DNA from: Mytilus edulis
Lineage: Eukaryota
Assembly (NCBI RefSeq): GCF_963676685.1
Contig: NC_092357.1
Coordinates: 43,214,001 to 43,278,000, forward strand
Length of the DNA: 64,000 nt
Reading direction: 5' to 3'
Translations under genes and position numbers: made by a program
The notes under the pieces: model-generated
What the model saw: the letters and a program-made list of their open reading frames with translations, nothing else
The model's database searches: none
What the model was told of the DNA's origin: nothing
Part shown: piece after piece, positions 15,250 to 62,986 of the stretch
How positions within the stretch are numbered: position 1 is the first letter of the stretch
Layout of the letters: each line of letters opens with the position of its first letter

Positions 15250-17110
15250 ATGTACAATGGTGTTAAAAAATATTCACCATACACATCTTATATGTACAGC
15301 AGTATCAAAAAATAAAGTTTACCATACACATATTATATGTAAAGTGGTATCAAAAAATAACATTCACCATACACATAATTATATTGTATGTAAAATGCTA
15401 TCAAAAACAAAATTCTGCATACATATATTAAGGCAGCAACCATTTGATTTTCAGTGGGGGGGGGGGGGGGGCTATGGATTTTTTTCCGGGACAAACTTTT
15501 TTTTTCGCCTTTGTCGAAAATAATTTTTTTTCTTTCAATTTTAGCATTCCATATAGTGGCAGATGAGGATGAAACAAACAATTTTTTTTCTCAGGGTCAA
15601 AAACAAATTATTCTTTTCTCCAAAAAAATTCACCATACACATATTGAATGTACAGTGGTAACAAACAACTCAATTCACCATACACATATCATATGTACAA
15701 TGGTATCATAAACAAGTTTCCCCATACACAAATTATATGTACAATGATCTCAAAAAATAAGACTCGCCATACACTTATTGTATGTACAACTGTATTAAAA
15801 ACAAGTCACCATACACATATATGATATGTACAATGGTTTTAGAAAGAAGAATCCCCATACAACATAATATGTACAATCATGGTATAATAAAACAAGAATA
15901 GTCATACACATATTACATGTACAATGGTAACTAAAACAAGAATCACTATACACATATTACATGTAAAATGGTATTAAAACAAGATTCATTATACACATTA
16001 TATCTACAATGGTATCCCCAAAAAAAGATTCACAAGACTCGCCATACACTTATTGTATGTACAACTGTATTAAAAACAAGTCACCATACACATATATGAT
16101 ATGTACAATGGTTTTAGAAAGAAGAATCCCCATACAACATAATATGTACAATCATGGTATAATAAAACAAGAATAGTCATACACATATTACATGTACAAT
16201 GGTAACTAAAACAAGAATCACTATACACATATTACATGTAAAATGGTATTAAAACAAGATTCATTATACACATTATATTTACAATGGTATCCCAAAAAAA
16301 GAATCACTCTACATATAGTATGTGTAAAATGTTATAAAAACAAGATTCACTATACACATATTAAATGTAAAATGGTATAACAACAAGATTCACTATACAC
16401 ATATTATTTGTACAATGGTTATAAAATCAAGAATCGCTATAGACATATTATATGTATAATGGTATTAAAAACAAGAATCACTATACACATATTATATGAA
16501 CAATGACAATAAAACAAGAATCACTATACACATATTATATGAAAAAACGGTAATAAAAACAAAAACCACTATACACATATAATATATCAAAAAAAAGATT
16601 CATCATTCACATACATGTATATGATATGAACAATGAAGTTAAAAAGAAGAATCACTATACACATATTACATGTACAATGGTATTAAAAAGAAGAATCACT
16701 ATACACATACTACATGTACAATAGTATTTAAAAAAGAAGAATCACTATACACATATTGTATGTACAATGGTATTAAAAAACACGAATCACTATACACATA
16801 TTATATGAACAATGGTAATAAAAATACAAGAATCAATATACACATATTTTATGTACAGCGGTATTAAAACAAGGTTCACCATACACAAATATTATGTACA
16901 ACAGTATTAAAAACAAGATTCACCATTTTCATATATTATGTACAACAGTACCAAACACAAGTGTAACCATGCACATATTATATGTACAACGGTATTAAAA
17001 CAAGAATCACTATACACATATTATATGAACAATGGTAATAAAAACAAGAATCACTATACACATATTATAGGAACAATGGTAATACAAACAAGAATCACTA
17101 TACACATAAA
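15250..17110. repeat. 43-44 bp satellite (aaaacaagaatcactatacacatattatatgtacaatggtatt)
   Basis: Dozens of tandem units, with a 275-bp higher-order duplication (15761 vs 16036). Confidence 0.9.
15432..15625. mobile_element. PIF/Harbinger-like MITE, right end deleted
   Basis: Left TIR ggcagcaaccattt after TAA. Complete copy at 48232-48469. Confidence 0.65.
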
Positions 17111-20299: not shown

Positions 20300-23200
20300 T
20301 CAAACATGACCCATCAATACCAAAAGCATATGATGTAGAATGTGTCTCTTCATCATATCTACCACAGATCTATGTCCATTATCAATTGCAATGTTTAAAG
20401 GGAATTTCCCATCAATTTTACATATGCCTGTGTCTGCTCCTTTCTCTAACAATAAATGTACTATTTCACTATGTCCTAGTTCGCATGCATAAAACAATGG
20501 CGTGGTGCCATCTTCTTTTTTCAAACTGATGCTAGCATGGTGATCCAGAAGACAACTGACTACTTCTTTCCAACCCATGAAACATGCAATGTGTAACGGA
20601 AAAGAACCAGCTACTACATCAAAGGCATAATCTGCTGACTTCCTACTGACATAATCTTTTACATTTGATGACCTATTATTTGCAAGGCAGTCAAAACAAT
20701 CTTGTTTTACTTTGTCTATTGTTGTCGTTGCATGGTAACTAAATTTATCGGCTATAGACTGTTTCCGATGGATACAACTTTTGCTGTTAGCATTGTTCTC
20801 TAAAAGTAACCGAGTTATTTCTACATTTCCATTAAGTGAACTGAAAAATAAAGCATTACCACCACCATTTGTCTGGGCATTAATGTTCGGTTTCGGGTTA
20901 TGTTGAATCAACAGTTGTACTATACTGGTGTTGTTTGTGGCACATGATGTGATCAGTGGTGTAAAGCCATCTTTTCTACATAGATTAATGTTAGGGTTTT
21001 TCTGTAATAGCAACTTTACTATATTAGTATGTTCGTTTTGAATTGCCATTAATAAAGGACTACAGCCAGTATTGTCACATAGATCAACGTTGGGGTCATT
21101 CTCTAACAGCAACCTTGCTGTATCAGTGTATCCAAACATAATTGCCATTAAAAGAGGACTACTACCCTCAGCGTTAGATAGATCAACGTCAGCATTCCAC
21201 TCTAACAGTAACCTTACTACATCAGTATGCCCAAATGTACTTGCCATTATCAGAGGACTATACCCATCTTTATCACACAGGTCTATGTTAGGACTTCTCT
21301 CTAACAGTAACCTTAGTATACCAGTGTGTCCTTTCATACTTACCATATACAATGGACTGCAGCCATTAATGTTACATAGGTCAACATTAGATTTGCTTTC
21401 TAATAGTAACCTCACTATATCAGTATGTCCTTTTGCACTTGCAATCAACAAAGGACTACAGTGTTCTCTATTACAAAGATTAACATTGGGGTTCCGCTCT
21501 AAAAGCAATCTCACTACACCAGTATGTCCGTTTGTACTTGCCATGAACAGAGGACTACACATATCTTTATCACAAAAATTGACATCGGGATGCTTCTCTA
21601 ATAGCATGCTCACAATAGTTGTTTTTCCTTGATAACTTGCGATGGCAAGTGCAGTAACCTTATCTGTGTTAAATAGATTAATATTAGGTTTTCTCTCTAA
21701 GAGCAATCTTACTACATTAGCGTGTCCTTCTTGACTTGCTACGTACAGAGGACTACTTCCATCTTTTGTGCATAAATCAATATTAGCGTTATACTCCAAT
21801 AGCATACTTACAAAAGACGTATTCCCTTGAGAACATGCAATAATCAGTGCAGTGGCCCCATCCGTGTCACATAGATCAACATTAACGTTCTTTTTTAACA
21901 GTAATCTAACTATATCAGTATGCCCAATCCGAATTGCAACGTACAAAGGACTACAGCCTTTGGCACATATATCAACGTTAGGATTCTTCTCTAATAACAT
22001 ACTCACAAAAGAAGTGTTTCCTTGAAAACATGCAAGTGTCAGTGCGGTAGTCCCATCTGTGCCACATAAATCAATATTAGCGTTCTTCTTTAACAGCAAC
22101 TTTACTATAGCAGTATGTTCATTCCGAATTGCAACGTGCAGAGGACTACAGCCATCATTGTCACATAGATTAATGTTTGGACTCTTCTTTAATAGCAATC
22201 TAACTATTTCAGTATGTCCTGCACGACTAGCTACATAAAGAGGACACGTTCCATTTTCAAAGTAACATGGATCAAGGACAAGTTCTGACAGAGACTCTCC
22301 AAAAGTTTTATTTACATATTGCCTAACTTTACGAAAAAGACTGTAGTCAATATTGACACATATATTTATGTTAGGATTTCTAGCTAACAACATACGTACT
22401 ATATCAAAATGCCCATTATCACATGCTACGAACAAAGGACTTATACCATAAATGTTACATTGATCGATACAAGGATTATTTTGTAAAAGCAACCTTACTA
22501 TGTTAGTATGTCCTCCCATGGTTGCTACGAGCAGAGGACTAAATCCTTGAACGCAACATACATCAACTTTATGGTTCTCTTTTAATAACAACCGAACTAT
22601 ATCAATATGTCCTTTCATACTAGCTGCTAATAGGGGACTTAAGCCGTTAAGGTCACATAGATCAACACAAGGGTTCCTTTGTAACAACATCCTTAATATA
22701 TCAGTATGTCCATTTATACTTGCTTTGAACAATGGACTACTGCCATTTGTGTCGCATAGATCAATGTTCGGATTTTTCTTTAATAACATGTTCACAATAT
22801 CAAGATACCCTCCCTCACATGCAAAACTGAGTGCAGTGACCCCTTGATTGCTACATTGATCAACATAAGGATTCCTCTCTAAGAGCAGCCTTACTATGTC
22901 AGTATGTCCCTTCTGACTTGCAACTAATAGAGGACTACAGTAACTAGTGTTACATACATCAACATTAGCATTTCCCTCTAAAAGCAACTTTATTATACCA
23001 GTATGCCCATTCAGACTTGCAATGTACAGAGGAGTACAGCTTTCATTGGTACATAGATCAACAGTGGCTTTCATTCCTATCAACAACCTAATTATATGAG
23101 TATGTCCTTCCATACTTGCAAAATAAAGTGAACTACATCCATTGATGTCACAAAGGTCAACATTAGGTTCTCTCTCTAACAGCAAACTCACTATATCGGT

Positions 23201-25594
23201 ATGTCCTTTCTTAATTGTAACTATCAGAGGACTACGCCCATATTTGTCACATAAATCCACGTTAGGGTTCCTTCCTAAAATCAACCTTACTACATCAGTG
23301 TGTCCTTCTCGACTTGCCATGTACAGAGGACTACATCCTTTTTTATCACATAAATCAACATTAAGATTTTTCTGTAATAGCATACTAACAATAGACGTAT
23401 AACCTTTATAGCTTGCCATGTGAAGTGCAGTTACCCCATCTATGTTGAAAAGATCAACTCTTGGATTTCTCTCTAAAAGCAACTTTACTATTTCAGAATG
23501 TCCGTTCTGACTTGCCATGCACAGCGGACTATAGTGATAATGGTTACATAAATCAATGTTAGGTTTCCTGTCTAAAAGCAACCTAACAATATCAGTATGT
23601 CCATTTTGACTTGCTGTCAACAGTGGGCTACAGAATTTTTTATTACATAAATCAACTGTAGGTTTCCTCTCTAAAAGCAGCCTTACTATATCAGCATGTC
23701 CTTCCTGACATGCCAAATAGAGTGGACTATAGCCTTTATTGTCAAATAAATCAACATCAATATTCTTGTCTAATAACATTTGAACAATTAGAGGATACCC
23801 TTTATAGCAAACTTTGGTTAGTGCAGAGGCCCCCAAATTGTTACATAGATCAATTTCCGGATTCCTCTCTAACATCAATCTTACAATACTAGTATGCCCT
23901 TTCTGAATTGCAATAAGTAGAGCACTTCTCCCATTATTGTTACATAGAACAATATTAGAATTTTTTTCTAACAGCAACTTTACTATAGCAGTATGTCCTT
24001 TCTGACTTGCCAGTAATATAGGACTACTGCCATTATTGTTACATAAATCAACGTTAGGATTTTTCTTTAACAGCAACTTAACAATATGAGTATATCCTTT
24101 CTGACTTGCCATTAACAAAGGACTACATCCTTTTTTTTTCACATAGATCAACATTTGGATTCTTCTTTAATAACATATCCACAATAGAGGAATAACGTTT
24201 ACAACATGCCATGTTTAGTGCAGTAACCCTGTCATCTTTATAATGATTTACATCCACTTCATTATCTAACAACCACTGTATCATTTCTGTATATCCATCA
24301 CGACAGCTCAATATCAGTGGAGTAGTGCCTGATCCACATTCCTCCTTTGGTATCACTGTATCCTTAATATTGGCCAGTACTATTTGTTGTTCCTTATCCA
24401 GTCGTATTAAATGTTGTAACAACTGTTGTCTGAATAATAATACTTTCATATTAGAGCTACTAAATACCAATGCTACTATTCCTGCCGACCAAATCTTTAT
24501 CAATCTTTTCAAATATGAATCTAAATATTTATCTTGTATATCAATAATAAAGTCTATGTTTTTCATTTTCTCATCTTGTGATTTCATCCAAAGAAAACGT
24601 TCAGTTACAAAACAACTATCCCCATGTTCTATTAAACATTCAATCATTTTCTGACCAAAGAAATAAGCAATGAAGTCAAATAGTTTATCATGTAAGATAC
24701 TATAAACTCCATTCTCTTTACACATGAATGTGCCATCTAGAGAGTCCAGTGCCATTTTAAGTTCTGCCTTGGATGTACTTCTATTCAATTTACAACCCTC
24801 ACATGTGTCTTCTATTATCTGTCGTTGTTCATCCGTAACCTTACCTTGCAACCATTCCTCTAATAGTCGATTATTAAATAAAACACATAAAGCAAGACCG
24901 CACACCTTATGTTTCCCTTCATCTCCATGTCTACTAAAATTGTCTAACTCTTTTTTATAGATATCAAAAGGAATTCTGAAAAATTCTTTAACATCTGTAC
25001 CTTTTTTTTCATGAAAAAGATAACATAAAAGAGGAAAGAATTCACAATGCTTTGCACTTTCATTAAGATTCATACTATTCAAACCAATATTATACTTATC
25101 TGCTATTTTTGTTTTTTCGTTTTCTGTAAGACATAACTCATCAGATATTAAGTTACATTCGCAAGGTATCAAAGGGGATAACATTATAAACTTATCATCT
25201 TTAAAAACTTGTAATCTACAACATACAATCACCTTACAGCATTTGTCAGCGATTATTGTGTTTATAACAGGTAGTAGCTGTTCCCAGTTCTCAATCTGTT
25301 GTTGGTTGGCAGTGAAATTTCCACAAATATCATCTACAATGAAGACTGTCTGTTTACCAGGTTGGTAATACACTCGTATATCAGTTGGTGAATAAATAGG
25401 TATGATTGTGTATCCCTCATTCTGCAAAACCAGTGTAGTGTGTCTAGCGATAAACGATTTCCCTACTCCTGCTGGGCCAGTTAAGGTCACACAGCTGTTA
25501 TCTTGTAAACATTTGATGACGTGATCACTAGCTCTTGTAGACACAAACATCTTATCTTTCTTTTTCCAGTTTTCAATTTGTTTATTTATCTGAT
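20300..25594 (-). CDS. Paralog B, coding exon 5: nSTAND3-like NTPase plus about 38 ankyrin repeats; one +1 frameshift in an A9 run (24131-24139)
   Basis: ORF 24123-25607 (Walker A GPAGVGKS, Walker B VFIVDD) and ORF 20300-24154 (33-aa ankyrin units) join if one A is removed. Acceptor at 25595-25596, TGA at 20300-20302. Confidence 0.88.
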
Positions 25595-25944
25595 CTAAAT
25601 TATGCAAGTAAAAGTCATTTGAAAAATAAAGTTAACTCATCTTGCAAAATAATTAGTTTGCTTACGTATACAATCTAAATCTAATCTATATACATGCTAC
25701 AACTTAAGCATGTATAGACAAGTGTGAACGATAAACAGGTTCAGCCCATCATTTTTTTCTTAAAATGTCTAGTACCAAGTCCGTTTTATGTATCATGTGT
25801 ATGCTGGTGTTTGCTTTTGTTGCAGTTTAGTGTTTCTGTTTAATTAGTGCGTTTCCCTCGGTTTTGCTTTTATATCCAGATTTGTTTTTGCTTAATCGAT
25901 TTATGACTATTGAACCGTGGTATACTACTGTTGCTCTTATTTAC

Positions 25945-26019
25945 CTCTGATGTTCTTTGGAATCACTTCTTCTTGCACCGTTTTCAACACCTCAATTTCC
26001 GTCAATAGTTCTTCTTTTG
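25945..26019 (-). CDS. Paralog B, coding exon 4 (75 nt)
   Basis: AG at 26020-26021 and GT at 25943-25944. Same peptide as paralog A exon 4. Confidence 0.88.
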
Positions 26020-26338
26020 CTGAAAAAATGTATTTTCTATTAACATCATAATAATGATAACCAATAATTTAAATGGTACTAGTATTAGATTTAAAACATT
26101 TCACAATTTAAAACATTGCCCTTTTTATTTGTAATGTGGTCTTTTAAAGGCAATAAAATTTATACTACTCTACTTTATGTACATTTTTATCAAACTTAAA
26201 TCCAAGAACCTCAATAAACTGATATAAAAAAACTCAGGGCTAAAAACAAACTGCATGCAACCATATGAAATGAAACATAAGCATTACTGCCAATAATTAT
26301 TAATAATAATATGGGTAATATAATCATTTTTATATTAA

Positions 26339-26715
26339 GTAAATTAACTCATCATAAATACCAGGACTAAATTTTGTATATACGCCAGACGCGCGATTCG
26401 TCTACAAAAGACTCATCAGTGACGCTCGAATCCAAAAAAGTTAAAAAGGCCAAATAAAGTAAGAAGTTGAAGAGCATTGAGGACCAAACTTCCTAAAAGT
26501 TTTGCCAAATACAGTTAAGGTAATCCATGCCTGAGGTAGAAAAGCCTTAGTATTTCATAAAATTCAAAATTTTGTAAACAGTTAATTTATAAATATAACC
26601 ATATCAATGATAATTCATGTCAGCACTAAAAGGTGCTGACTACTGGGCTTGTGATACCATCGAGGAAATAAATCTCCACCAGCAGTGGCATCGACCCAGT
26701 GGTTGTAAATTAACT
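26339..26715 (-). mobile_element. Full-length retrozyme-like monomer (366-bp period) with near-intact hammerhead at 26382-26425
   Basis: 11-bp direct repeat gtaaattaact at both ends; absent in paralog A (~1087). Minus strand GCGTCA-CTGATGA-GTCT(TTTGT)AGAC-GAATC-GCGC-GTC-TGGCGT with a single A15.1>U change. Confidence 0.82.
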
Positions 26716-28016
26716 AAACACATAAAGTTACTTTATCTGTTTTCAATGCGCTGTTTTTATCATGATCAGTTATTTGAACGTTTCTATTTGTATGGAAGTA
26801 TGCAATAATAGTGGCAAAAAGATTTATCCCGGCATATATATATGTTACGAAACATTGGTCATCTTCGTGAAATTAGGAGTGTACTGAATATTCAACAGTA
26901 TAAAATTACATACACCCATGATTAAAACCACCAATAACATTTTTTTTACGTATTTGAATTCATTCGGCATATTTGCTATCTAGCAGTGGTGTAATTTGTT
27001 TTCTAGATTAAATACACTGCAATGAATAGGAAAACATACACCATGAAAGCATGCAGAATTTGCACATTTGCACATCAATCAGTTTGGTAAGTTTCAAATA
27101 AACTAAAAAATGAAATAATCACGAAACGTATAGATGGAATACCATACGAAACCAACTCACATTGTTTGTAAGTAAACTGCTGAAAAGCAATATTTTATTT
27201 TCACAACCGACATGCCGTTATTTTTTCGATGTCAGTACACATATTAATTGTCTTTCATTTATGATATTTTGACTTGCAAGAGAAATTATCCCGAGGTCAT
27301 AGTAATCTATGGAAAAAACAGTCCCTGGGATCGGATTTTTAATTGTAGTTTGAACCACAAATGAAAAATGTGACCACTGCAATTAAAGTTAAGCATTGTT
27401 GAATGTATAATTGGTTGGAATAATCCATAGCATGAAGGAGAAAACCTTGACTAAGAAAAAAGAATATTAAACTCTTTCAAACAATATTTTTTATTATAAT
27501 ATTTCGGATATTTTTGAAAATTAGTATATCACAACTTCAAATTATGCATGTTCTTGTCAGATTAGCTTCCGGTCACTTGAATATGCTTATCACAATGCTC
27601 ATATTTGTGTGGTTTTGTGTTGATCAGTCTCTTTGGGTTTTTTCATATTGTGTACTGTTGTTTGTCTTGTTATGGTTTTGCGTTTTTTTTGCCTCAATAT
27701 ATGGTTTTAATTATTATTGTTTGCAATTCGTTATCCATTTTTGAGAACTTAAGCTAGGTATAAAGCATGTTAAAAATTCTATGTAATAAAGAAGAAAATG
27801 CACCAAGCCAGGAATATGGCAGTTGTTATCCATTCGTATGTTTTGTTTCAGCTTTTGATTTTGCCATTCGATTACAGACTTTCCGTTTTTAATTTTTCCT
27901 CGGACTTCGGTATTTTTGTTATTTTACTATTTTCAGTTGTTAAAAAAGGAATGTTGTTTTACTGGCAAAATGTGTTAACTTAAGGGAACTCATTTTCATA
28001 TTTATCTCACACTTAC

Positions 28017-28206
28017 TTTTAGCATTAGCTGCTTGTTCCTCTTCGTGACATATTTTCAAGATCTTAAATGACTGTTTTAACTCCTCAATCTCATTCTTTG
28101 AGTGTTTAATTTCCAGAATTATTTCTTTATTTGTTTGATCAAGTACCTTTGTCTTTAACTGATCACATTCTAACCTCATTGATGGTCCACCTAATCTTCC
28201 AATAGC
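28017..28206 (-). CDS. Paralog B, coding exon 3
   Basis: 190 nt with canonical AG/GTAAGT sites; ORF 27940-28179. Confidence 0.88.
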
Positions 28207-28508
28207 CTAAAATAATATAAGATGCGTTTATAAAAGTAGGAGGTTTAGCTAGCTATAAAACCAGGTTTAACCTTCAAGTTTTTTCCCCGAAAATGCCTGT
28301 TCCGAGTCAACAGTCCGAGACAATGTTTCAAGTCTGGAATATGATAATGTTTCAAGTATACAATATGACAATGTTACATGTCTCGAATAGGACAAATTTC
28401 AATATCTGGAATATATTGTGAAAGCAATTTACATATATGATTGCACCAAAGAGAAAACATACGTTCATACATCAATAATGTTTTTCAAATTTTTGATTGC
28501 ATACAAAC

Positions 28509-28738
28509 CTCACTTATGTCCTCCCAGGAAGTTGAGAAAAAAGTATTGTCTATCTTGCAGATTTCCATGTGCGCTATGTAGTTTCTGTAATACTTTATTC
28601 TTGCCAAATCTGAAGCAGGAGATGTCTCAGTAGACCCAGGCAGGTGGTCATATCCCTTTACAGGATACGTTAACTCTGCTAAGTTTCTCAGTAATGTTAT
28701 AATCAAAGTAACGTCAAAGGTGTCTGACTTGGGAATAT
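28509..28738 (-). CDS. Paralog B, coding exon 2 (HEPN core, RNYIAH at 28569-28586)
   Basis: 230 nt with canonical splice sites; ORF 28485-28793. Confidence 0.9.
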
Positions 28739-29899
28739 CTGTCAATAAGAATCTATTACTTTGAAGAACAAATGCATATAAAAGTGACATCATTTCCTAG
28801 TAACACGTTATCGGATGAGCAGACAAAAATATATTTTTCTTTTGTTGAAAGCTTCTTCTTTCATTTTTTATGTATAAATAAATCCTAAATGTATAGGTCA
28901 TATAAGCTTTATCAGATAGAAGTGTACATATTTGATTCAAGGACATCGTTCATTATAATATTATTATAATCGTATTACAAGAAACGCAAGAACTTAATAG
29001 TGACCAATGAACCATGAACTATGAAGTCAAATTGAGATGAATTATGTTAAAACGAGATGTACATACATCTCATCATTATATATTGCAATTGTAGTGGACA
29101 TTAAATTAGCGTAATTGTGTAACCTTTACTCACACATCATTCAAGAAGGTCTATGAAAAATGATGAGATCAAGGTCAGATCAACCTAGTCAGACCAACAC
29201 GAAGAACTTTTAAAGTCATTCTTAGTAACGAAAACTTAACAGCTAATCACTAAACCATGAATGTAACATATTATGCTACTAATTCTTAATTATTTGTATC
29301 TTTTCAAAATACACTTAAGTTTTGAATATCAGTCAGCTACTGTTGTCGCAAATTTAGGTATAAAGCAACATACGATTTCACTGGCGTTGGTTCATATAAC
29401 GAAATGTATGATGGATTAATATTAACCCATCAAAGATACCAGGATTGAAATTTTTTATTAAAGTGTAAGAAGTTTATGAACATGGTGAAGTGTCAACTAT
29501 CAAATCCATATCAGGACGAGAACATATAAATATTAAATGAGTATTAAAGTGCATTTCTTTCTCACAAAAAATGTAAACGTTGTGTGGCGTTTGTTGTTGT
29601 TTTCAAAACGCTACAAAAGTAGAAACAAATATATCGTTTAATTAGTGTTTATTGACCCTGTTTGAACTTTCAAAAATGCATGCACATGTTGGTGAACTGA
29701 CTTTTTCACAACGTAGAAACAAATACATCGGTTAATCAGGTTGAAGTTACAAACAAATGTAGCGTTTGTACTAACAAATGATGAACGAAAAACTGTAGAC
29801 GTATTTCTAGCAAGTGCATAGTTTGTCAAAGTTTACTTAAACTTATGTTAGAAACAAATGATCAAAGCTTACCCGTTTGCATCGTTTGTGGTAAATCTA

Positions 29900-30210
29900 A
29901 ACCCGAGGGTATCACCACCCCAGTAGCCAGTACTTCGGTACTAGCATGAAAATACGGATTTTTTGTGTTATTAAAATTAGCTGTTACAAAATGATAGAAA
30001 TTATTATAAATTAAGGAATGTATCTCTCTCATGCAAAGCTCTGATTCCTTTCACGGATTTGGCTATACTTTTTGGACCTTTTGGATTATAGCTTTTCATC
30101 TTTTATATAAGCTTTGGATTTCAAATATTTTGGCCACGAGCATCACTGAAGAGACATAAATTGTCGAAATGCGCATCTGGTGCAAGAAAATTGGTACCGT
30201 TAATTTTATT
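29900..30210 (+). mobile_element. Second-family retrozyme-like repeat
   Basis: Shares the cccgagggtatcacc..cccagtag motif with the reverse complement of 26634-26665 and carries an intact hammerhead. Absent in paralog A. Confidence 0.75.
30140..30183 (+). ncRNA. Type I minimal hammerhead ribozyme with intact core; predicted cleavage after AUC (C30177)
   Basis: GCATCA-CTGAAGA-GACA(TAAAT)TGTC-GAAA-T-GCGC-A-TC-TGGTGC. Helix I has 6 bp, helix II 4 bp, and helix III is short and palindromic. Confidence 0.85.
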
Positions 30211-30372
30211 GTACTATATTGAAATGTTGAGCTGGAAGATTGTTGATGTTGTTCATAAGTTTCATAGGGAACAGTGATTGGTCGATTGATTTGCTAATTT
30301 GATATATTAATTAAATCCAGTATAATTACAATTAAATTCAAATTCAATTGATAGCATTTAGATTACCTTTCT

Positions 30373-33300
30373 ATGTATTTTTCAAAGTTGTACAAAATCG
30401 AACATGTAAAATGTTGTTTGTTTATAGTTAACACGTGTTTGGTTAATTATAGTAAGGTCGGTTCGATTGGGATATTGAGTTTATGCACGAGTGAACTCGG
30501 GTGGTTTAAAGTCATTCGAGCCATTGCAGTCAAAGTGTACAGTAGCATTTTATTAGTTTCTCTTCGAATTGTACTTTCGTAATATGACAAGTTCTGAACG
30601 TGAAGAAAGTCAACTCTATGACATTATGATACTGACATAACAGATAGAGACATGTTAACAAAAATTGCAGACATAACCATTGAACAATTCTTAAGCGGAA
30701 CAAGTTATTACGATTGCTGATAAGTCACCAGCAGGTTGTGATACAGTCAAAGAATATCTGTCAGACGAGCTTGCTTAGGTTTCTGATGATGATAAGAAAA
30801 CTAGGTCGGACTCCGCTTTAACACGGACCTTGACGCACCTAGAAGCAAAAATAACAAGAGAGTTTTAAAGATCAAGGTGATAAGTATTGTTTACATAATG
30901 TATGGTTTTTCATCATATTGATATGAATATAAAAATTTATTATATAAAATGAACATTTAGATACAATTCAGAACATGACATTTTAATTTGAAAAAGAATC
31001 CCTCTTCATGATCTATTTAGGGAAATGAGAAGAACATAAATATTTGAAAAATAATGATACAAATTTTTTCGTTTTATACATGATTGATAATGGTTATTCT
31101 ATCCAGTTTATCACGATTCAACCAGTTATACTGTAATATTTAACAAGAACTATATAAAAATGCTGAATTTGTTTCAGAAGCTAATCCAGAGAAAGGAATT
31201 GTAAAGGGGATCATTTTTGTCCTACATGTAGTTAAACAACACGTTTACGAATAATTAATCAGTTCTTTTTTTCTTGGTATCCAGTTCAGTATACATCAGA
31301 TTTTTAGCATGTTTAATGAGTACTAACTATTAAAAAAGTTAGAAAAGGAGAAAAAGATATCTGACATGTGCAGTAGATAAAAAAAACATAGTTATCATGA
31401 GCTTTATCTAAATTTTAATACAGTAACCAAGAGTTTCATTTTGAATATTGTTGTCTAATTTACGCATTTTGAATGATACTAGTCGAATTCTTTTAGGTTT
31501 AGTACTTTTTGAGTAAATTAATCATTTGTCTTAATCGCTGGGCTGATTGATTATTAAATCTACTGATAGTTATATAAAGGCACTGGGCTATTAATCAATT
31601 AATCCACTGGACAGGTTGTTATTGAAGCCACTGGTCTAGTTGTTAGTGATGCCACTATTCGTGTGGTTATTGAAGACATTGTACACATTGTAATTAAAAC
31701 CACTGGGCTGATAAATAATTAAGCGTCTGGGCATGTTGTTATTGACGCAACTGGGCGTGTTATTATTGACGCCACTGGGTCTGTTATTATTGACGCCACT
31801 GGGCGTGTTTATTGTTGACGCCTCTTTGCGTGCTATTGACACCACTGGGCGTTTTGTTATTGACGCCACTGGGCGAGTTATTATTGACACTACTTGGCGT
31901 GTTGTTATTAACACCACTGGGTGAGTTGTTATTGACGCCACTGGGCGTGTTATTATTGACGCCTCTTGGGGTGTTATTGACGCCACTGGGCGTGTTGTTA
32001 TTGATGCCACTGGACGTGTTGTTATTGACGCCACTGGGCGTGTTGTTATTGACCCCACTCGGCGAGTTATTTTTGACGCCACTGGGCGTGTTGTTATTGA
32101 TACCACTGGACAAATTGTTATTGACGCCACTGGGCGTGTTATTATTGACGCCTATAGGCGTGTTATTGACGCCACTGGGCCTGTTGTTATGGACGCCACT
32201 GGGCGTAATGATATTGATGCCACTGGGTGAGTAATTTTTGACGCCACTGGGCATGTTGTTATCAAAGTCACTGGGCAAGTTGAAATTGAGGCCACTTTGC
32301 AAGATGATGTTGAGGCCACTGGGCAGGTTGTTATTGACGCCTCTTGGCGTGTTATTGACGCCACTGGTCGAAATGTAATGGACGCAACAGGGCAGGCTGT
32401 TATTGACGCCACTGGGCGTGTTGTTATTAAAGCCAATGGGTAGGTTGACATAGAAGCCGCTTGGCAAGATGCTGTTGAAGCCACTGAGAATGTTGTAATT
32501 CAAGCCATGGGCTAGAAGTTATCTAAGCCATTAGGCATGTTGTTTTTAATGCACTGAGTATGTTGTTATAGACGCAACTGGACAATTTGTTATTGAAGGC
32601 ACTGGGCAGGTTATTTTTAAAGCCACTGGGAAGGTTGTTATAAACGCCACTTGGGAGGTTGGTATTGAAGACATTGGGCAGGTTGTTTGTAAAACCACTT
32701 GGCAAGTTGTCATTGATGAAGACACTTGGCTGGTTATTGTTGAAGCCACTGGACTGGTTGTTATTGATGCCGATGGACAGGTTGTTATTGACTCCACTGG
32801 ACATGTTGTTATTGACACAACTGAGCAAACTTATTATTAATGTCGAGGGAAAGGATGCTGTTGAAGTCACTGGGTATGTCGTAATTAAAGCCATGGGCTA
32901 ATAGTTATTTAAAACGCTGGGCAATTACTATTGACGCCACTGGGTAAGTTGTTATAGACGCCACTGAGCGGATTGGTATTGAAGCTGCTGGACATGTTGT
33001 TTGTAAAGCCAGTGGACAGTCTGTTAGTGAAGACACTTGGCTTGTTCTTATTGATGCCCATGGGCAGGTCGTTGTTCACGTCACTAGGCAGGTTGTTGAA
33101 GCCATCGGACGTGTTGTTATTGAAGAAACTTGGCAATTTGTAATTAAAGCCAATGGGCTGATAGTAAATTAACCCACTGGACATGTTATTATACAAGCAA
33201 CTGGACATATTATTATTAATACATATAGGCATGATGTTGTTATAAAAGATATAGGCTGATAGTTAAATTAGGCAATTGGGCATGTTATTAAGGCCACTGG

Positions 33301-35321
33301 GCAGGTTGGTATTGAAGCCACTGGGAAGGTTAACGTTGTTTGTAAAGCAAATGAGCCGGTTGTTTTTTGAAGACACTGGGCAGGTTCTTATTGACATCAG
33401 TGGGCAGCATGTTGTTGAAGACATTTGACTGGTTGTTGTTGAAACCACTCGACATTTAGTAATTGAAGCTACTAGGCTGATAGTTACTGGACTTGCAGTT
33501 ATTAAAGACTCTTGGGTAGTAGTTGTTGAAGACACTGGGCTTGGTGTTGAGAACATTGGGTTGGTAGATGTTGAAGACACTGGGCTTGGTGTTGAGGACA
33601 TTGGGTTGGTAGATGTTAAAGACACTGAGCTTGGTGTTGAGGACATTGGGTTGATCGATGTTGAAGACACTGGGCTTGGTGTTGAGGACATTGGGTTGTT
33701 AGATGTTGAAGACACTTTCTGTGACTTGGCTGCTTGTTGTTGAAGCCACTGAGCAGGTTGTTATCACATCACTTGGCTGGTAGTTGTTCAAGACACTGGG
33801 CATGTTGATCTTGGAAACAGTGGGTAGGTTGTTATTACAAACACTTGGCTGGTAGTTATTCAAGACACTGGGCATGTTGATGTTGAAAAGACTTGGTAGG
33901 TTGTTATTGAAGACACTTTGTAGGTTATTATTGAAGACACTTGGCAGGTTTGTTGATGAAGCCTCTGTGTATGTTGTTATTGAAGACACTGCTGATTGTT
34001 GTTGAAGACATTGTACAGGTTGTTTAGTTATTGAAGACAATGGGCTTGTTGTTATTGGAGACACTGAGTTGGTTGTTGAAATTCTCGGCTGGTTGTTAAA
34101 GATACTGGGCTGGTTGTTGTTGAAGACACTGGATCAGTTTTTGTATACACCACTGGAGATGTTATTAAAGACACTGAGGTGGTTGTCGTTGAAAACAATG
34201 GGCAAGTTTTAATTAAAGGCACTTGGCTGGTTGTTGTTGAAGACACTGGGTATGTTGTCATTGAAGACACTGGACAGGTTGTTATTGCAGACACTGGGCT
34301 GGTTGTTGTTGAAGACACTGGACAGGTAACTGTTGATGAAGCAACTAGGCTGTTTATTATTTTAGTAACTTAGCATATTATTATTTAAGTCACTAGGGCA
34401 TGTAGGGCGAATGTATAGACAAAACGGATTGTTATTGAAGCTATATGGATGAATTTCAGACATGTATATTGGTATATTATTTAACAAAATAAATGTCTTT
34501 AAATAGTTATATTAAAGATGCTGACATACACCTTGATTAATTACTTAGACTAGTGAGAAAAACATTCGCCAAGTAGTCAAATGTTCATTCTCAATTTTAT
34601 AAGTTTCGAAATGATTCGTCTCTCGTATACAAGAGCCAGTGCTAACACCTGTACTTCTGATAAGATTTTTCTGAAGCTTAACAGGTAAAAATCAGACTGA
34701 GAAAAGAATGGTTACGTTAGAGAAGACTTTCCAGGACAATTATCTGTTCGTCGAAATGAAGAAATTAAAATAAATATTCAATGCTATTCTCCCGTTCTTT
34801 GTGTTTCGAGAGCACTTGTCTCTGCAAGTGGCGTCTCCCATGTAAGAGTTTGTGGTTATTTGATAAATATTTTATGTTCGTTTGAGTTTACGAATTATAA
34901 TTTAAATGTATTTTTCAAATTTGTACAAAATCGAACGTGTAAAATGTTGTTTGTTTATAGTTAACACGTTTTTGGTTAATTATAGTAAGGTCGGTTCGAT
35001 TGTGATATTGAGTTCATGCACGAGTGAACTCGGGTGGTTTAAAGTCATTCGAGCCATTGCAGTCAAAGTGTACAGTAGCATTTTGCAAAATAAATAATAT
35101 TATTAATCATATTATTTATTTTCAGATTTGTGGACCACAAGTGTGGGGAAACCAGTACAAGCTGCTTAATAGCTATATATTTATATGAACTTTCAACAAT
35201 ATGATACTCATATTTATAATAAAATGTGCGCTTGTCTCTGCAAGTGGCGTCTCCCATGTAAGAGTTTGTGGTTATTTGATAAATATTTTATGTTCGTTTG
35301 AGTTTACGAATTAGAATTTAA
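30373..35321 (+). mobile_element. Decayed tyrosine-recombinase retrotransposon with split direct repeats (Ngaro/PAT-like), about 4.95 kb
   Basis: A1 30373-30551, B1 ~34812-34905, A2 34906-35084, B2 ~35230-35321. gag-like remnant at 30693-30805 and YR remnant at 34620-34757. No TSD; empty site in paralog A at ~4354. Confidence 0.8.
31540..34370. repeat. Degenerate 24-bp (21/24/45-bp variants) minisatellite, consensus near gacgccactgggcgtgttgttatt
   Basis: Tandem units read directly. Most homogeneous at 31740-32430, with a 45-bp sub-array at 33527-33715. Confidence 0.88.
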
Positions 35322-36664
35322 TTAAAATAATTATGATTCTTTGAATTGCATACGAGAATATTGGATACGGTGATTAAAAATATTTTCGACATTTTATTCG
35401 CAAATGAAAAATTTAGGTTGAGTGAAAAATTGTGTTTTAATATCGTTAATGTTTACATGTTATAAAGAACTTTGAACATAACCACTGTAACATGTGTATT
35501 GTTTAATAATGTATACAAGTGTCTCTTCACTGTAGAATAAACAACATTGTTTTTTTAATTAAATATTTCAGCTCAGTGCACATTTTCAATAAACGAAAAG
35601 AACGGTACAAAGCGTGACAAAATAATGATCAAGTAGTTAAATTGTCTGCGGAGACACAATGACATTAACATTATGATTTTACAGGTTTTGATCACTAATT
35701 CAATTGTTAGAATGGTTTAAGTATAACAATGAATTGTAATAATAGCGATAATCCATAATAAAGTTATAGATAGTTTATTATTCTCAATATGAATATGATT
35801 GTATGAAAAACTTCATAGTTTGATATTTAGGAAATATTATATTTTAAATTGTAATTATATTTAAATTGTGTCAATTTCATGTCCATTTTCAAATTTATAA
35901 ATTGAAACAGAGTCAACTACAATAAATTGATTACTAATTATCTGTGATTTCATTGTAATATGTCATTTATTATAGCTTATTATGATTACTGTTTACAGTT
36001 ATTCAATGTCTCCTAAGGAACAACATATAAGAATGGTGTTATATTTTACATTTCTTAGACATTTGATACAAATCAAAGTCCTAATGATATGCATAGGCAG
36101 TTTCATAATTGTCTCAGTACTAGTATTTAGGAACTTCCAGTTTATTTCCCTATTAAAAAGTAAGTTAGTAACAACAGATGCAATTGATGGCAATTTATAA
36201 CACATCTTAATTTGTTAATACTTATCATATTGACTATGGAACACGAACTTTCATGCCTGCAAATTTGTCTACGTTGCACGTCAGTCCTTCAAACTATTCT
36301 ACCCTATTGGGGAAATCTCATAGTCGGTGTACACCTGACCCTTACAAAATTCAATTACTTAGACTCAATACTTTAAAAAGCATTCAGAGGTATAGAAAAC
36401 ATTTAAACACATTATTCTTATTAAAAGCCATAGAGGTTCTGAATAAGTACACTAATCATATGCATATGTCCTTGAACTTAAAATTCCACTTAATATTTTA
36501 AATGGTTGGCTTGTATGCATGTATTTTAATAGTAGCCAAGATGTTAAGAAACAACAAATAGTATTGCTTCTTGTTCACAGTATGAAACGGTATCCAGATT
36601 ACATAGGAAATTTCAAATTGCATTGCAGGTGGTTTATAACATGTATCAGTTTATTAATACTTAC

Positions 36665-36884
36665 CAGGTTGCCTTGGAAACAACAAGTTCCACTGCTGCA
36701 AGTTTATAACTTTTTTCTTGTCTTTCAAGTCATTCAGTTTCTTATATTCTTTCTTCAGCGTTGCATATAAAAAAGAAGGATGGAATTCCCTATCAAATAA
36801 AACTCGTGCAGCACGTGGAGATATCCCTGTTATCAGCAAGCCAATTCTCACATAGTTGTCTTCTTCTTTGGTGAGAGATGCCAT
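36665..36884 (-). CDS. Paralog B, coding exon 1 (MASLTKEEDNYVRIGLLITG...)
   Basis: ATG at 36884 and GTAAGT donor at 36664. 220 nt, phase 1. Confidence 0.9.
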
Positions 36885-43505: not shown

Positions 43506-44614
43506 TGTTTGTCGAGCCTGCGACTTATGTTGCAGAAAGCTTGACATAGGGATAGTGATTCGGCGGCAGGGTTCGCTAACTTCTTTAAAAAAAAGCTTTA
43601 TATTTTAGAAGGTTGAAGACCTGGAATCCTCATGTTGCGAAGTTTCCGTCAGTCATATGTCCAATGTCTTTAACCTCATGTTCATGGTTCAGTGACTACT
43701 TTAAAAATAAGTTATGATTTTTTGTAATGTTAAATTCTCTCTATTATAAGTACTATTAATAGGATTACTATACTTGTTTTGTGCTTACCTTGCAAGGTCC
43801 TCATGCTCGTCAGACCGTTTTCACTTGACCTGGACCTCATTTCATGGATCAGTGACTAAGGTTAATTTTGGTGGTCAAGTCCATATTTCAGAAACTATAA
43901 GCAATAGGTCTAGTATATTTGGTGTATGGAAGGACTGTCAGGTGTACATGTCCAACTGGCAGGTATCATCTAACATTGTCCTCATTTTCATGGTTCAGTG
44001 GTTATAGTTGAGTTGTTGTGTTTTAGTCTTATTTTCTTATACTGTATGCAATAGGTCTACGAAATTTTGTGTATGAAATGATTTATAAGGTGTACATGTC
44101 TAGCTGGAAAGTGTCATCTGACCTTGACCTCATTTTCATAGTTCAGTGGTTAAAGTTAAGTTTTTGAGTTTTAATTTTTTTTAATACTTTATGCAATAGG
44201 TCAACTGTATTTGGTGTATGAAAATATTTTATGATTATAGGTCAGTCACACAGGTTTTATTTGACCTTGACCACATTTGCTCAGTGTTAAGTTTTTGTGT
44301 TTTGGTCTGTTTTTCTTAAAATATATGCAATAGGTCAACAGTATTTGTTGTATGGACGAATTGTTTGCTGTACATGCATGCCTGGCATGGTTCATCTGAC
44401 CTTGACCTCATTTTTATGGTTCATTGGTCAATGTTTAGTTTTCTTGGTTAATGTTAGGGCTTATGTGACAGTTGTAATAAAGCTTTATATTCAGGACTAT
44501 CAACATAATATTAATGATTATAGTAGTAATAGTTATCAAAGGTACCAGGATTATATTTTAGTACACCAGATGCACGTTTCAAGAAGGCGAGACATTTCAG
44601 CGTGTTCACTCTTG
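43506..44614 (+). mobile_element. HINE/DINE-like element, paralog of 10021-12165, with a ~60-bp retrozyme fragment inserted at 44521-44580
   Basis: 5' gtcgagcct...aagcttgac hairpin, internal tandem units and the same 3' end. Confidence 0.6.
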
Positions 44615-44833
44615 TATCCATTTAGTCCTGTTTTGTTTACTTTAGGCAAGGACTATTCCATTGCTTCTGATACATGGACAAAGCGATTTTATGTAACACT
44701 TAAGCATATGCCATCTACATTTCTTATTGTAGTAATATCTATTTATTAAATAAGATAAGATTTTCCGGTTCCTAGAGTGACCTTCATATTCAGGTCTGAC
44801 TAAGTTATATGGATTTTTGTGATAACAAGGGTA

Positions 44834-48469: not shown

Positions 48470-49161
48470 TAATTGAACAATGGTATAACAAAATCACGAT
48501 ACACATATTTTATGTATAACGGTATCAGATAATAAAATTCACCTTTACATGTACAGTGGTATTAAAATTCACCATACACATATTTAATGTACAGTGGTAA
48601 CAATCAACTCAATTCATCATACACATATCATATGTACAATGGTATCATAAACAAGTTTCCCCATACACAAATTATATGTATAATGATCTCAAAAAATAAG
48701 ACTCCCCATACACTTATTGTATGTACAACTGTATTAAAAACAAGTCACCATACACATATATGATATGTACAATGGTTTTAAAAAGAAGAATCCCCATACA
48801 ACATAATATGTACAATCAAGGTATAATAAAACAAGAATAGTCATACACATATTACATGTACAATGGTAAATAAAACAACAATAACTATACACATATTACA
48901 TGTATAATGGTATTAAAAACAAGATTCATTATACACATATTATATCTACAATGGTATCCCAAAAAAAAGATTCACTATACACATGTTATTTCTACAATCG
49001 TATCCCAAAACAAAAGATTCACTATAAATATATTATATGTAAAATGGTGTAAAAACAAGATTCACTATACACATATTAAATGTAAAATGGTATAACAACA
49101 AGATTCACTATACACATATTATTTGTACCATGGTAATAAAAACAAGAATCGCTATTATATA

Positions 49162-49620
49162 GGTGTCAGACCACCAATTAAAAATCCCTATCTGTTCAAC
49201 CAAATTTTGCAATTTTCTCAGCTTTCTAAATATTTTACCTTAAGTTTAACTTCATAGAAACGAGGTATATTCTTAATTGTACATGTATCAGCTTTCTACA
49301 TGCCAATTTTCACCATACCTTTAAAGCCTTCTAACAAAATAACTGACCTTCAAACAGAGGTACTCCAAAACAAAAACCTGGTTTTCTGGAAATCTAAAAT
49401 TAGTATACTATGGAGGGCATTAATCCTCAATTTTTAATGCAAACTCATAGACAAGTAAATTTTGGCTCAAGATGATCTAGATATATTTCTCTTTCACCAA
49501 AAGTTTCATTTCTGCAAATTTGTTGGTTAGTTTAAGTAAACAAGGACGTCAAAAGCACTATTTTGTGTCAGAGTAGGGCTACTTTTACATACGTTCTAAA
49601 TTGGAAGGAGGTCTGACGAC
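49162..49620. mobile_element. TA-flanked TIR element (about 459 bp) inserted in the satellite
   Basis: Imperfect TIRs ggtgtcagaccacc / ggaggtctgacgac. Absent at the paralogous site ~16440. Confidence 0.7.
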
Positions 49621-59554: not shown

Positions 59555-60135
59555 CTAAATTATGTGAGTAAATGTCATTTTGAAATAACTGTAAACACAT
59601 CTTGCCAAAAAAATATGGTTTTACTTAATAAAAATACAAACTAATTTGATTTATACTTAAACTACAACTTAAACATGTTGTACTGACTACTGACATATTT
59701 CTCTAATTTTTGTGCTTTACTCACATTTTTTTAACGGTGTGAGAAAAAACATTTTTCCTCGTTTTTTTTTCATAGATTGTTAATTTTAGTTCTTTTAAGG
59801 TATGTATCTTTTTTATTTCCGCATCAACTTAAAAGGGAAGACATAGTTCTTTGAAATGAAGTTTAACCGAGACAAAAATGTGCCTAACCCAAGTCATCCT
59901 TGTCAACTTTATGTTACTGTTTTATTTCATGATTTCAGTGGCGCATCAATATACTCCAAATGTGTCTACAGTCTTTTTTCTGTAGAGCTTGACATATAAC
60001 ATAGACACATGTATGTTTGTTAAGACTAGTTTGGACGGGCTGCTGTCTTATTTACAATATCCCAATGTTTCCTTTCATGTACATATTTGTTTTGATAACC
60101 TTATTTTCCAAAAACCATGCTCCCAACTCCGTATA

Positions 60136-62316: not shown

Positions 62317-62463
62317 TATGTGTCACCGTACGGCCTTCAACAACGAACAAAACCCATACCGCATAGTCAGCTATAAAAGGCCCCGAAATATCAGATGTAA
62401 AACAATTCAAACGAGAAAACTATATACAAATTTAAATTAGGACAATTGTGGACAGCACATTAC

Positions 62464-62538
62464 CTCTGATGTTCTTAGGAATCACTTCGACCTGCATCAT
62501 TTTTAATGCCTCAATTTCCGTCAATAGTTCTTCTTTTG
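62464..62538 (-). CDS. Paralog C, coding exon 4 (KEELLTEIEALKMMQVEVIPKNIR); upstream exons lie beyond the window
   Basis: AG at 62539-62540 and GT at 62462-62463, 75 nt. The gene is probably a pseudogene or truncated. Confidence 0.8.
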
Positions 62539-62986
62539 CTGAAAAAAAGTATTTTCTGTCAAATGCATTCCATCCACTTATGAGAACAATACTAGTATTA
62601 GATTTGAAACAATTTTGCTAAAAACAATGCAGTGAACTTTTAAACTGCATTTTTTTCTTTTCAAGACAATAGGTTTTACACGCCTATGCTTAAGGAACAC
62701 TTTTATCAAACCCGTGAATCTAAATTCAAAATTTGGATATTGTTCTAACATGATTTTTTGTAATAACATTATATAAGATTGATACCCATGATATGAAAAC
62801 TTTATTTCTAAGGCAGCAATAATCTTTCAAACTGACTCGTTAAACATATTGCAGGTGTAAGTAGCACCCAAACTAAACTGTTTACACTCAGGGGGGAAAC
62901 GTAATATCTAACTACTCACAGCAATATGTAATGATACATTAACATAACTACCAATAATGCGGGTAATATACTCGTCTTTATATTAA

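Follow-up and report, generated by a model that had tools for sequence, protein, structure and literature searches.

HEPN-STAND-ankyrin genes in a tandem array of Mytilus edulis as candidate NLR/Avs-like switches with a putative RNase head

Could the large HEPN-STAND-ankyrin genes that lie in tandem in the genome of Mytilus edulis encode receptors that answer a ligand with an RNase of their own? Adaptive immunity is lacking in bivalves, whose genomes contain huge families of receptor-like genes for intracellular proteins, and these families change fast. We analysed a window of 64,000 nucleotides (the whole stretch of DNA under study) on a chromosome-scale contig (C14). An earlier note on this DNA had reported at least three tandem copies; three were found, here called copy 0, copy A and copy B, all on the minus strand. 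The window sequence is free of N. The copies show 85–92% identity, are mosaic and differ by large indels; for these reasons, a haplotype-duplication artefact was rejected as the origin of the three copies. Across the genome we counted at least 87 NTPase bodies of the nSTAND3-ankyrin type and at least 150 HEPN_DZIP3 exons. The introns of the array genes hold very high-copy elements, and the genome is repeat-rich. Open reading frames between the genes and in the intron minisatellite of the window matched no Pfam family above threshold. The array is part of a family of cytosolic proteins, very large in bivalves, with a DZIP3-type HEPN head, a coiled-coil-like linker, an nSTAND3 NTPase with helical and winged-helix domains, and ~38 ankyrin repeats. 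Taking our best explanation as a whole, we consider it probable on balance that its genes act as an NLR/Avs-like switch with an RNase head.

Copy A was proposed to consist of five phase-compatible exons with one base to correct, and this model was borne out. Exon 1 (36665–36884, 220 nt) starts with an ATG at 36884, has a GT donor past 36665 and encodes the N-terminal part of HEPN_DZIP3; it is collinear with residues 1–59 of the annotated paralogue P0009. Exon 2 (28509–28738, 230 nt) encodes the HEPN core, exon 3 (28017–28206, 190 nt) the end of the HEPN domain and part of the coiled-coil-like linker, and exon 4 (25945–26019, 75 nt) a further part of the linker. Exon 5 (20300–25594, 5295 nt) encodes the nSTAND3 NTPase, including a helical and a winged-helix part, followed by 38 ankyrin units, and ends in a stop at 20300–20302. 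The exons have canonical AG/GT borders and compatible phases, and lack in-frame stops. Exon 5 is covered by two open reading frames (24123–25607 and 20300–24154), into which it is split by a single surplus base in the nine-T homopolymer at 24131–24139, read as nine A in the coding direction. This base, located by aligning the three copies, of which copy 0 is intact, is the only defect of copy A in the reference. The homopolymer lay outside the coverage of the DNA run X15.

RNA data show that copy A is transcribed, with splicing as predicted. An RNA-type contig from run X1 spanned 28508–28739 with zero mismatches to copy A, in an exon (exon 2) that sets copy A apart from copy 0 at 17 sites; the contig's 66 and 60 extra letters mapped elsewhere. 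A contig of the same run joined 28017 straight to 26019, that is, exon 3 to exon 4, with 0 other letters. From run X2, a contig spanned 28017–28205 with flanks that mapped elsewhere, and an RNA-type contig lacked one letter of copy A at 24132 and had T>G at 24131, which gives the copy 0 length and an open frame. An in-frame version of copy A is thus expressed in a second sample. Unique intron stretches had zero depth in the RNA data of two studies, compared with ~100x in a DNA run. In the raw RNA-seq run X21, of which ~6% of the reads were sampled, no reads fell on exons, only on intronic high-copy repeats. Of the spliced transcript on which the earlier note had made its reading depend, the RNA-type contigs directly showed the join of exon 3 to exon 4 but not that of exon 1 to exon 2.

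BLAST with the exons of copy A located copy 0 (1–6479, continuing past the left edge of the window), which is intact. Its exons 1 to 4 (6479–6260, 3187–2958, 2606–2417 and 761–687) have AG/GT borders and no stops, and exon 5, whose first base is 358, leaves the window at the left in an unbroken frame (L001:4566–9872), 5294 nt long from the acceptor. The product is 2002 amino acids long, the length that had been anticipated for copy A. Copy B is dead. Its exon 5 (54298–59600) is a pseudogene, with frame-changing deletions of 10, 10 and 2 nt and a TAA stop that leave frame pieces of 416, 392, 243 and 485 aa; a remnant of exon 4 (62460–62550) has 89% identity to that of copy A, and exons 1–3, including the HEPN exon, lie outside the window.

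A broken frame in the copy A assembly next to a clearly dead copy B is what would be expected if the locus were mainly the graveyard of a birth-and-death family, in which the copy A frameshift was genuine and the reference animal had no other form, and the array had no joint function. Only copy 0 would then still be protein-coding. However, copy A is transcribed and spliced, with copy-A-specific reads that match it at all 17 differing exon 2 sites; its defect sits in a nine-base homopolymer, the kind of place where assemblies classically err or lengths vary between individuals; and its in-frame version is expressed in X2. The dN/dS ratio of copy 0 versus copy A was also well below 1, at 0.24–0.46 in every region. 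We consider the graveyard explanation quite unlikely.

Exon 5 of copy A is a clean chimera, whose 5' 2.74 kb match copy 0 and whose remainder matches copy B. Among 743 informative sites, the first 300 were nearly all of the copy 0 type and the others of the copy B type; 686 fit one breakpoint, at 22851–22856 within the ankyrin array, upstream of which the sequence follows copy 0 and downstream copy B. The flanks of copy A agree with this pattern. Such a composition is the signature of one unequal crossover, and copy A arose from one between the copy 0 and copy B lineages. Copy A is a natural chimera, in which whole blocks of the ankyrin sensor were swapped between neighbours, as blocks are likewise exchanged by unequal crossover in plant NLR clusters.

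The count of about 38 ankyrin repeats given in the earlier note proved accurate: a self-built repeat profile found 2+36 = 38 units in copy A, Pfam Ank matched 31 stretches, and Ank_2 matched exon 5 with E 2e-236. The DNA of the ankyrin region has a 99-nt tandem period. When dN/dS was calculated per position of the ankyrin unit, the highest values (~1.0–1.3) fell at two canonical binding-surface positions and at others. This is a weak, unreplicated hint that binding-surface positions may be changing faster, and we do not claim positive selection, because the top ratios also occur elsewhere in the unit and each position is represented by only ~30 codons.

Upstream of the ankyrin units, the 5' part of exon 5 matched Pfam nSTAND3 (PF20720) with E 1.9e-26. 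This agrees with the P-loop NTPase that had been read from the motifs of copy A, both of which were located (GPAGVGKS at 25478–25455 and VFIVDD at 25346–25329). In 22 paralogues, Walker A residues G47, G49 and K50, Walker B residue D93 and sensor-1 R131 were invariant, and Walker B residue D92 was invariant or nearly so; F191-P192 (GxP-like) and H306-D307 (MHD-like) were also invariant, with motif equivalences assigned by position. In a confident AlphaFold2 model (pLDDT 85.7), the nucleotide-binding domain is of the alpha/beta kind, and helical domains and small ones of beta-hairpins come after it. The best PDB matches that Foldseek gave for this model, with probability 1.0, were Avs5, NLRP2/3, NOD2, Apaf-1, NLRC4, Dark, a TPR-STAND protein and SAMD9, at TM-scores of 0.2–0.4, low values that are expected because these are multi-domain hinge proteins. 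A PDB sequence search with the NTPase alignment was swamped by ankyrin proteins and returned no NTPase relative. The NACHT family (PF05729) was absent from the Pfam matches at E <= 0.01, and the C-terminus had no LRR, carrying the 38 ankyrin units instead. Since neither NACHT nor LRR matched, the array gene is, as judged by its predicted domains, not an NLR by family rules. The effector-STAND-repeat layout of NLRs ascribed to it was thus upheld in domain order, STAND hallmarks and an NLR/Avs-like predicted fold, but not in family membership.

The HEPN domain is split over exons 1–3. For profile searches each exon was queried separately, with the frameshifted exon 5 as two pieces. Exon 2 alone matched HEPN_DZIP3 (PF18738) over profile positions 37–115 with 82 bits (cut-off 27; E 4.5e-23), and exon 1 continued the profile over positions 3–35 (E 3e-4). 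The R-x4-H dyad, RNYIAH at 28586–28569, is shared without change by copy A and copy 0, so the DZIP3-type HEPN domain with an intact, conserved dyad stands as first described. The coiled coil named with it fared less well, the linker being coiled-coil-like by weak profile matches and composition. A PDB sequence search with HEPN exon 2 returned no relative. Characterised HEPN RNases are active as dimers; a homodimer prediction for residues 1–170 of paralogue P0009 in two copies scored 0.01, a result that speaks neither for nor against dimerisation. An Asn directly after the Arg of R-x4-6-H, as found here, is typical of active HEPN RNases (PMC9646362), and RN-x3-H is kept in 33 of 45 HEPN-headed relatives. 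We found no RNase activity in the searched literature for any DZIP3-type HEPN domain.

In close paralogues the head position holds either HEPN or CARD. The two kinds of head were interleaved on the NTPase tree, which implies 16 switches or more; both occur together in three proteins of Mytilus coruscus. Replacement of HEPN by CARD fits an effector or signalling slot, and the interleaving of heads on nearly identical bodies supports reading HEPN as a putative output module. The same pattern suits an alternative in which the head is an RNA-binding sensor or homotypic adaptor rather than a nuclease, and the STAND oligomer a signalling platform as in CARD-headed NLRs, given that HEPN swaps freely in one slot with CARD, a pure adaptor, and sits beside it in the three M. 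coruscus proteins. One sub-clade of the HEPN-headed relatives has K-N-x4-H, with Lys in place of the catalytic Arg of R-N-x3-H. Coral authors call the HEPN domain 'RNA-binding', and recent papers report RNA binding by the HEPN domain of SACSIN. The head could also bind RNA rather than cut it by the example of human DZIP3, which is known as an RNA-binding ubiquitin (E3) ligase. Retention of the R-N-x3-H dyad in copy A, copy 0 and most of the relatives counts against a head that does not cut, and we think this alternative unlikely.

Fusions of DZIP3-type HEPN to ankyrin or NACHT, with an expansion in the oyster, were described by Anantharaman 2013 (PMC3710099), and tandem HEPN_DZIP3-NACHT arrays, enriched in bivalves, by Takeuchi 2022 (PMC9646362), where the RNase hypothesis is likewise put forward. 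Surveys of cnidarians, corals and amphioxus agree on HEPN_DZIP3-NACHT proteins (including Emery 2021, PMC8260672). Hence the novelty attached to this locus by the earlier note was overstated: both the architecture and its expansion in bivalves were already in print (2013 and 2022), in computational accounts only, and the locus adds no new kind of system. Its remark that the combination would be present in automated annotations was correct, and, as it had also supposed, the searched literature yielded no functional description of HEPN-STAND-ankyrin proteins. The array genes share with the published HEPN_DZIP3-NACHT-repeat proteins an N-terminal HEPN with R-x4-H, a central STAND, C-terminal superstructure repeats, tandem arrangement, lineage-specific expansion and a predicted RNase effector. 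They differ in having nSTAND3 rather than NACHT and ~38 ankyrin repeats rather than LRR, TPR or WD40, although the 2013 table does list ankyrin fusions.

Likenesses extend to other systems. Bacterial Avs proteins, such as the SIR2-STAND protein Avs5 (PDB 9jap), are built alike, with a STAND switch between an N-terminal enzyme effector (predicted here) and a repeat sensor at the C-terminus; Foldseek placed Avs5 first among the matches of the NTPase model, at ~13% sequence identity, and the nucleotide-binding domain matched the PADLOC candidate defence family PDC-S73 (E 2.9e-15). In contrast to Avs, the array genes are animal, have introns, a HEPN head and an ankyrin sensor, and no known ligand class applies. 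RNase L, with the KEN domain it shares with Ire1, likewise couples an ankyrin ligand sensor to a dimerisation-dependent RNase of the HEPN superfamily (predicted in the array genes), but it has 9 N-terminal ankyrin repeats, carries a pseudokinase where the array proteins have a STAND NTPase, and ends in a KEN domain that comes from another HEPN family. No exon of copy A gave a Pfam match to a kinase or KEN domain, and the resemblance would be functional only. Human SAMD9/SAMD9L are reported (PMC10246899) to be animal proteins of the STAND type whose own effector, an RNA nuclease, is switched on by infection. SAMD9 was among the fold matches (as 9zjs); its effector is not HEPN, it lacks an ankyrin array, and the gene is single or low-copy. 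Fungal NLR-like proteins (NACHT or NB-ARC with ANK, TPR or WD40) have non-death-fold or enzyme heads, ankyrin-type sensors and reshuffled repeat units, but belong to another kingdom and other NTPase clades, and the relation is one of analogy.

In Avs and NLR proteins, N-terminal effectors are switched on by oligomerisation. By this logic, the NTPase of the array proteins would keep ADP at rest via the His-Asp motif of the winged helix, and a ligand on the ankyrin solenoid would free it from that state. NTP-dependent oligomerisation would gather the HEPN heads, and a composite RNase site built from two R-x4-H motifs may then cleave host or viral RNA. In the array, the sensor would be diversified by crossovers, both among repeats and from gene to gene. 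Motifs and predicted fold agree with an NLR/Avs-like reading; the RNase activity and the activation by oligomerisation are inferred. As an alternative to pathogen sensing, the proteins might serve genome defence or RNA surveillance against transposons or the animal's own RNAs, or another role with the ankyrins as a scaffold; Takeuchi 2022 (PMC9646362) suggested transposable-element RNA as a possible target, and the repeat-rich genome with its high-copy intronic elements would suit such a role. Lineage-specific expansion, tandem arrays, chimeric reshuffling of the sensor and CARD/HEPN swapping are, however, the usual marks of innate immune receptors, and although these marks are compatible with transposons as the trigger, we judge a role other than pathogen sensing very improbable.

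HEPN-STAND fusions have been predicted as sensor-nucleases since 2013, and the present locus offers an intact copy 0 for expression and a transcribed sister copy. We suggest tentatively, as a possibility that falls somewhat short of probable, that the HEPN-headed members, with copy 0 as the intact example, are ligand-activated RNases, and that swapping of HEPN and CARD heads, and of ankyrin arrays by unequal crossover as seen in copy A, provides bivalves with a combinatorial sensor/effector repertoire. If true, no animal STAND receptor before these would have been shown to carry out defence itself by means of a HEPN nuclease, and RNase activity, if shown, would tie animal innate immunity to the logic of bacterial Avs.

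The exons of the candidate gene (copy A, minus strand) were set by reading the DNA together with a script that printed splice contexts, in a window that spans C14:43214001–43278000 and contains no N. Exon 1 starts at an ATG (36884..36665, 220 nt) and is followed by exon 2 (28738..28509, 230 nt), exon 3 (28206..28017, 190 nt), exon 4 (26019..25945, 75 nt) and exon 5 (25594..20300, 5295 nt), the last divided between two frames (ORFs 24123–25607 and 20300–24154). All boundaries were AG/GT, the phases were compatible and there were no in-frame stops, confirming the five-exon model of the earlier note. The exons were queried against Pfam one by one, with exon 5 in two pieces. Results showed HEPN_DZIP3 in exon 1 (profile positions 3–35, E 3e-4) and in exon 2 (positions 37–115, E 4.5e-23), and nSTAND3 at the start of exon 5 (E 1.9e-26) followed by ankyrin repeats; the HEPN, P-loop NTPase and ankyrin parts claimed for the protein were thus all matched. 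The HEPN catalytic motif RNYIAH (28586..28569) and the Walker A and B motifs GPAGVGKS (25478..25455) and VFIVDD (25346..25329) were found where the first reading had placed them, and a repeat profile made from the protein's own units counted 2+36 = 38 ankyrin units, for an estimate of about 38. Copy A is almost certainly a gene of the HEPN-STAND-ankyrin family.

At least three tandem copies had been proposed, and window self-comparison, a whole-genome search and BLAST of the exons gave three units in the window. For copy 0, at the left edge, BLAST placed exons 1 to 4 on the minus strand at 6479..6260, 3187..2958, 2606..2417 and 761..687; exon 5, also minus, runs from 358 past the edge, with its remainder in the fetched adjoining DNA (L001). 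Because this exon is a single open frame of exactly 5294 nt counted from the acceptor, copy 0 is intact, with 2002 aa predicted, and has exactly the form that the earlier note had given copy A (~2002 aa) after correcting one base. Relative to copy 0, copy A has one additional base in the nine-T run 24131–24139. Exon 5 of copy B (54298–59600, minus) has lost 10, 10 and 2 nt at three places and is interrupted by a TAA stop, and copy B is therefore a pseudogene; its sole small exon within the window, by BLAST, is exon 4 (62460–62550, minus). A diverged fourth family member (69% identity, 2219-aa open frame) lies ~60 kb beyond the window at C14:43338028–43339485. HEPN exons were also seen outside the window at C14:43294638–43294919, ~20 kb upstream of copy B, and at C14:43359842–43360090, ~20 kb upstream of the fourth member; the former may be the missing exon 2 of copy B.

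We compared exon 5 of copy A with those of its neighbours by sliding identity. The first 2.7 kb was 93–98% identical to copy 0, and the sequence beyond that point was 96–99% identical to copy B. Of 743 informative sites, at which copy A shares the base of one of two differing neighbours, nearly all of the first 300 agreed with copy 0 and the others with copy B, such that one breakpoint at exon-5 nt 2739–2744 (window 22856–22851) accounted for 686 of the 743. The flanks were divided in the same way: the upstream region of copy A matched that of copy 0 at 92% and its 3′ flank matched that of copy B at 90%, whereas the 3′ flank of copy 0 was just ~80% like that of either copy A or copy B. Copy A is thus a chimera: for minus-strand genes in the order 0, A, B, a single unequal crossover between the two genes of an ancestral array would yield exactly this arrangement, although gene conversion at a later stage may have made the pattern sharper. 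The dN/dS ratio between copies 0 and A was 0.24–0.46 in all regions, indicating purifying selection on both lineages.

Four public sequencing runs were compared with window positions 23900–28850. Runs X1 and X2 came from different studies and were both labelled 'RNA?'. Their depth was zero at the unique intron stretches 26058–26223 and 26722–27717, the exons were covered, and the same stretches had ~100-fold coverage in the DNA-type run X15; X1 and X2 therefore behave as RNA. A contig of X1 joined 28017 straight to 26019 with no mismatches, which is the exon 3 to exon 4 splice; no contig directly showed the join of exon 1 to exon 2 or that of exon 4 to exon 5. Exon 2 was exactly spanned by an X1 contig (28508–28739) whose 66 + 60 extra letters mapped elsewhere, and an X2 contig showed the same pattern for exon 3. 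The contigs come specifically from copy A, which is distinguished from copy 0 by 17 sites in exon 2 and by 3 in the stretch of exon 3 that was covered. The annotated paralogues P0009, P0018 and P0005 were collinear with all four small exons, and the raw RNA-seq run X21 yielded no exon reads in the ~6% of it sampled. At the homopolymer, one X2 contig was a base shorter (at 24132) and read G in place of T at 24131, and the loss restores the copy-0 length and the open frame; this length was read from X2, as X1 contigs break there and X15 is without coverage. Because the X2 version is in frame, the frameshift of copy A reflects an error in the assembly or else a polymorphic run length, and does not prove the gene dead.

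Several repeats accompany these genes. A GC-rich minisatellite block (43% GC) in intron 1 of copy A (31604–34327), absent from the much shorter intron 1 of copy 0, consists of a 24-nt unit (31604–33097, ~63 copies; 33734–34327, ~25 copies) and a 45-nt unit (33512–33716); long periodic reading frames of as much as 238 aa run through both of its strands, and no Pfam family matched them above threshold. A 44-nt AT-rich satellite, which is part of the duplicated unit, forms arrays (15630–17108, ~33 copies; 48567–49155, ~13; 49619–51035, ~32) 3–5 kb past the 3′ ends of copies A and B. The intergenic part of that unit holds short tandem arrays with periods of 126–161 nt (10330–11677, 43894–44223), and nearby ORFs (e.g. 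44297–44749) had no Pfam match. Introns 2 to 4 of copy A carry very high-copy dispersed repeats (26224–26721, 27718–27900, 28216–28381), probably short transposable elements, with summed word depths in X15 of hundreds of thousands to millions; they were also plentiful in the RNA-type runs, among them raw RNA-seq reads, which matched both strands.

The NTPase was aligned using a 494-aa piece of copy A, copy 0 and 20 same-genome paralogues (40–69% identity). Invariant or nearly so were Walker A G47/G49/K50, Walker B D92/D93, R131 (the Arg at the sensor-1 position), the GxP-like F191-P192 of the first helical domain, and H306-D307, which recalls the MHD motif of Apaf-1 and plant NLRs, the sensor-1, GxP-like and MHD-like equivalences being assigned by position. 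AlphaFold2 run on this alignment gave a mean pLDDT of 85.7 and pTM of 0.79. The best PDB matches in Foldseek, all at probability 1.0, were Avs5 SIR2-STAND, NLRP2/3, NOD2, Apaf-1, NLRC4, Dark, archaeal TPR-STAND and SAMD9, with TM-scores of 0.2–0.4; low TM-scores are usual for hinged multi-domain proteins. We therefore class the NTPase as a STAND. Its nucleotide-binding domain (24126–25607 piece, residues 6–140) was also matched by PDC-S73, a candidate phage-defence family in PADLOC (E 2.9e-15), a hint that the nSTAND3 body has a relative in bacteria. Because the Pfam search of copy A matched neither NACHT nor LRRs, the predicted protein is NLR-like rather than an NLR.

In the 1.37 Gb genome, at least 87 NTPase bodies of copy A type were scored, and at least 150 HEPN_DZIP3 exons exceeded the Pfam cut-off (150/150 scored, from 651 candidates). 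Relatives formed 503 clusters at E ≤ 1e-30 among 1.8 billion representative proteins; close relatives were all from Mytilus species, and the named distant clusters were from Mytilus and the blood clam Tegillarca. Among the best 120 relatives, bodies 60–69% identical began with either HEPN_DZIP3 or CARD, and three Mytilus coruscus proteins (P0109, P0114, P0116) had both ahead of nSTAND3; they are genuine two-headed proteins or else adjacent genes merged into one model. In a quick FastTree built from the NTPase region, the two heads were interleaved and at least 16 switches were required, a count subject to gene-model errors and the weaker tree method. This places HEPN in the slot held by a death-fold signalling domain in sister genes. 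RN-x3-H was retained in 33 of 45 HEPN-headed relatives, and a 12-member sub-clade (P0045, P0048, P0049, P0053, P0064, P0072, P0101, P0104, P0109, P0110, P0114 and P0116) had K-N-x4-H in its place, where activity may be altered or lost. The main rival to a nuclease head is a HEPN that serves as a non-catalytic RNA-binding or adaptor module; no experimental test of DZIP3-type HEPN-STAND activity was found in the literature searched.

Our data show the architecture with its motifs and fold, the purifying selection and the transcription. From the workings of Avs and NLR proteins and of HEPN RNases, we infer that the ankyrin solenoid would bind a ligand, that the ADP-locked STAND would then open and oligomerise, and that paired HEPN heads would form a composite RNase site. 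We give this full chain slightly less than an even chance. The observation in the earlier note was correct, and its NLR-like sensor-nuclease reading is a reasonable hypothesis that is not new. The DZIP3/hRUL138 HEPN family was already known to be fused to ankyrin, NACHT, CARD, Death and LRR and to show lineage-specific expansions in oyster and Nematostella, with RNase-L-like defence roles proposed (Anantharaman 2013, PMC3710099). [quoted passage not shown] The same head appears in cnidarian, coral, Aplysia and amphioxus surveys, and Mytilus members are already entered in UniProt as 'DZIP3-like HEPN domain-containing' or 'Novel STAND NTPase 3 domain-containing' proteins. To this our analysis adds the intact copy 0, the expression of copy A and its homopolymer frameshift, the origin of copy A as an unequal-crossover chimera, and the exchange between HEPN and CARD heads within the family.
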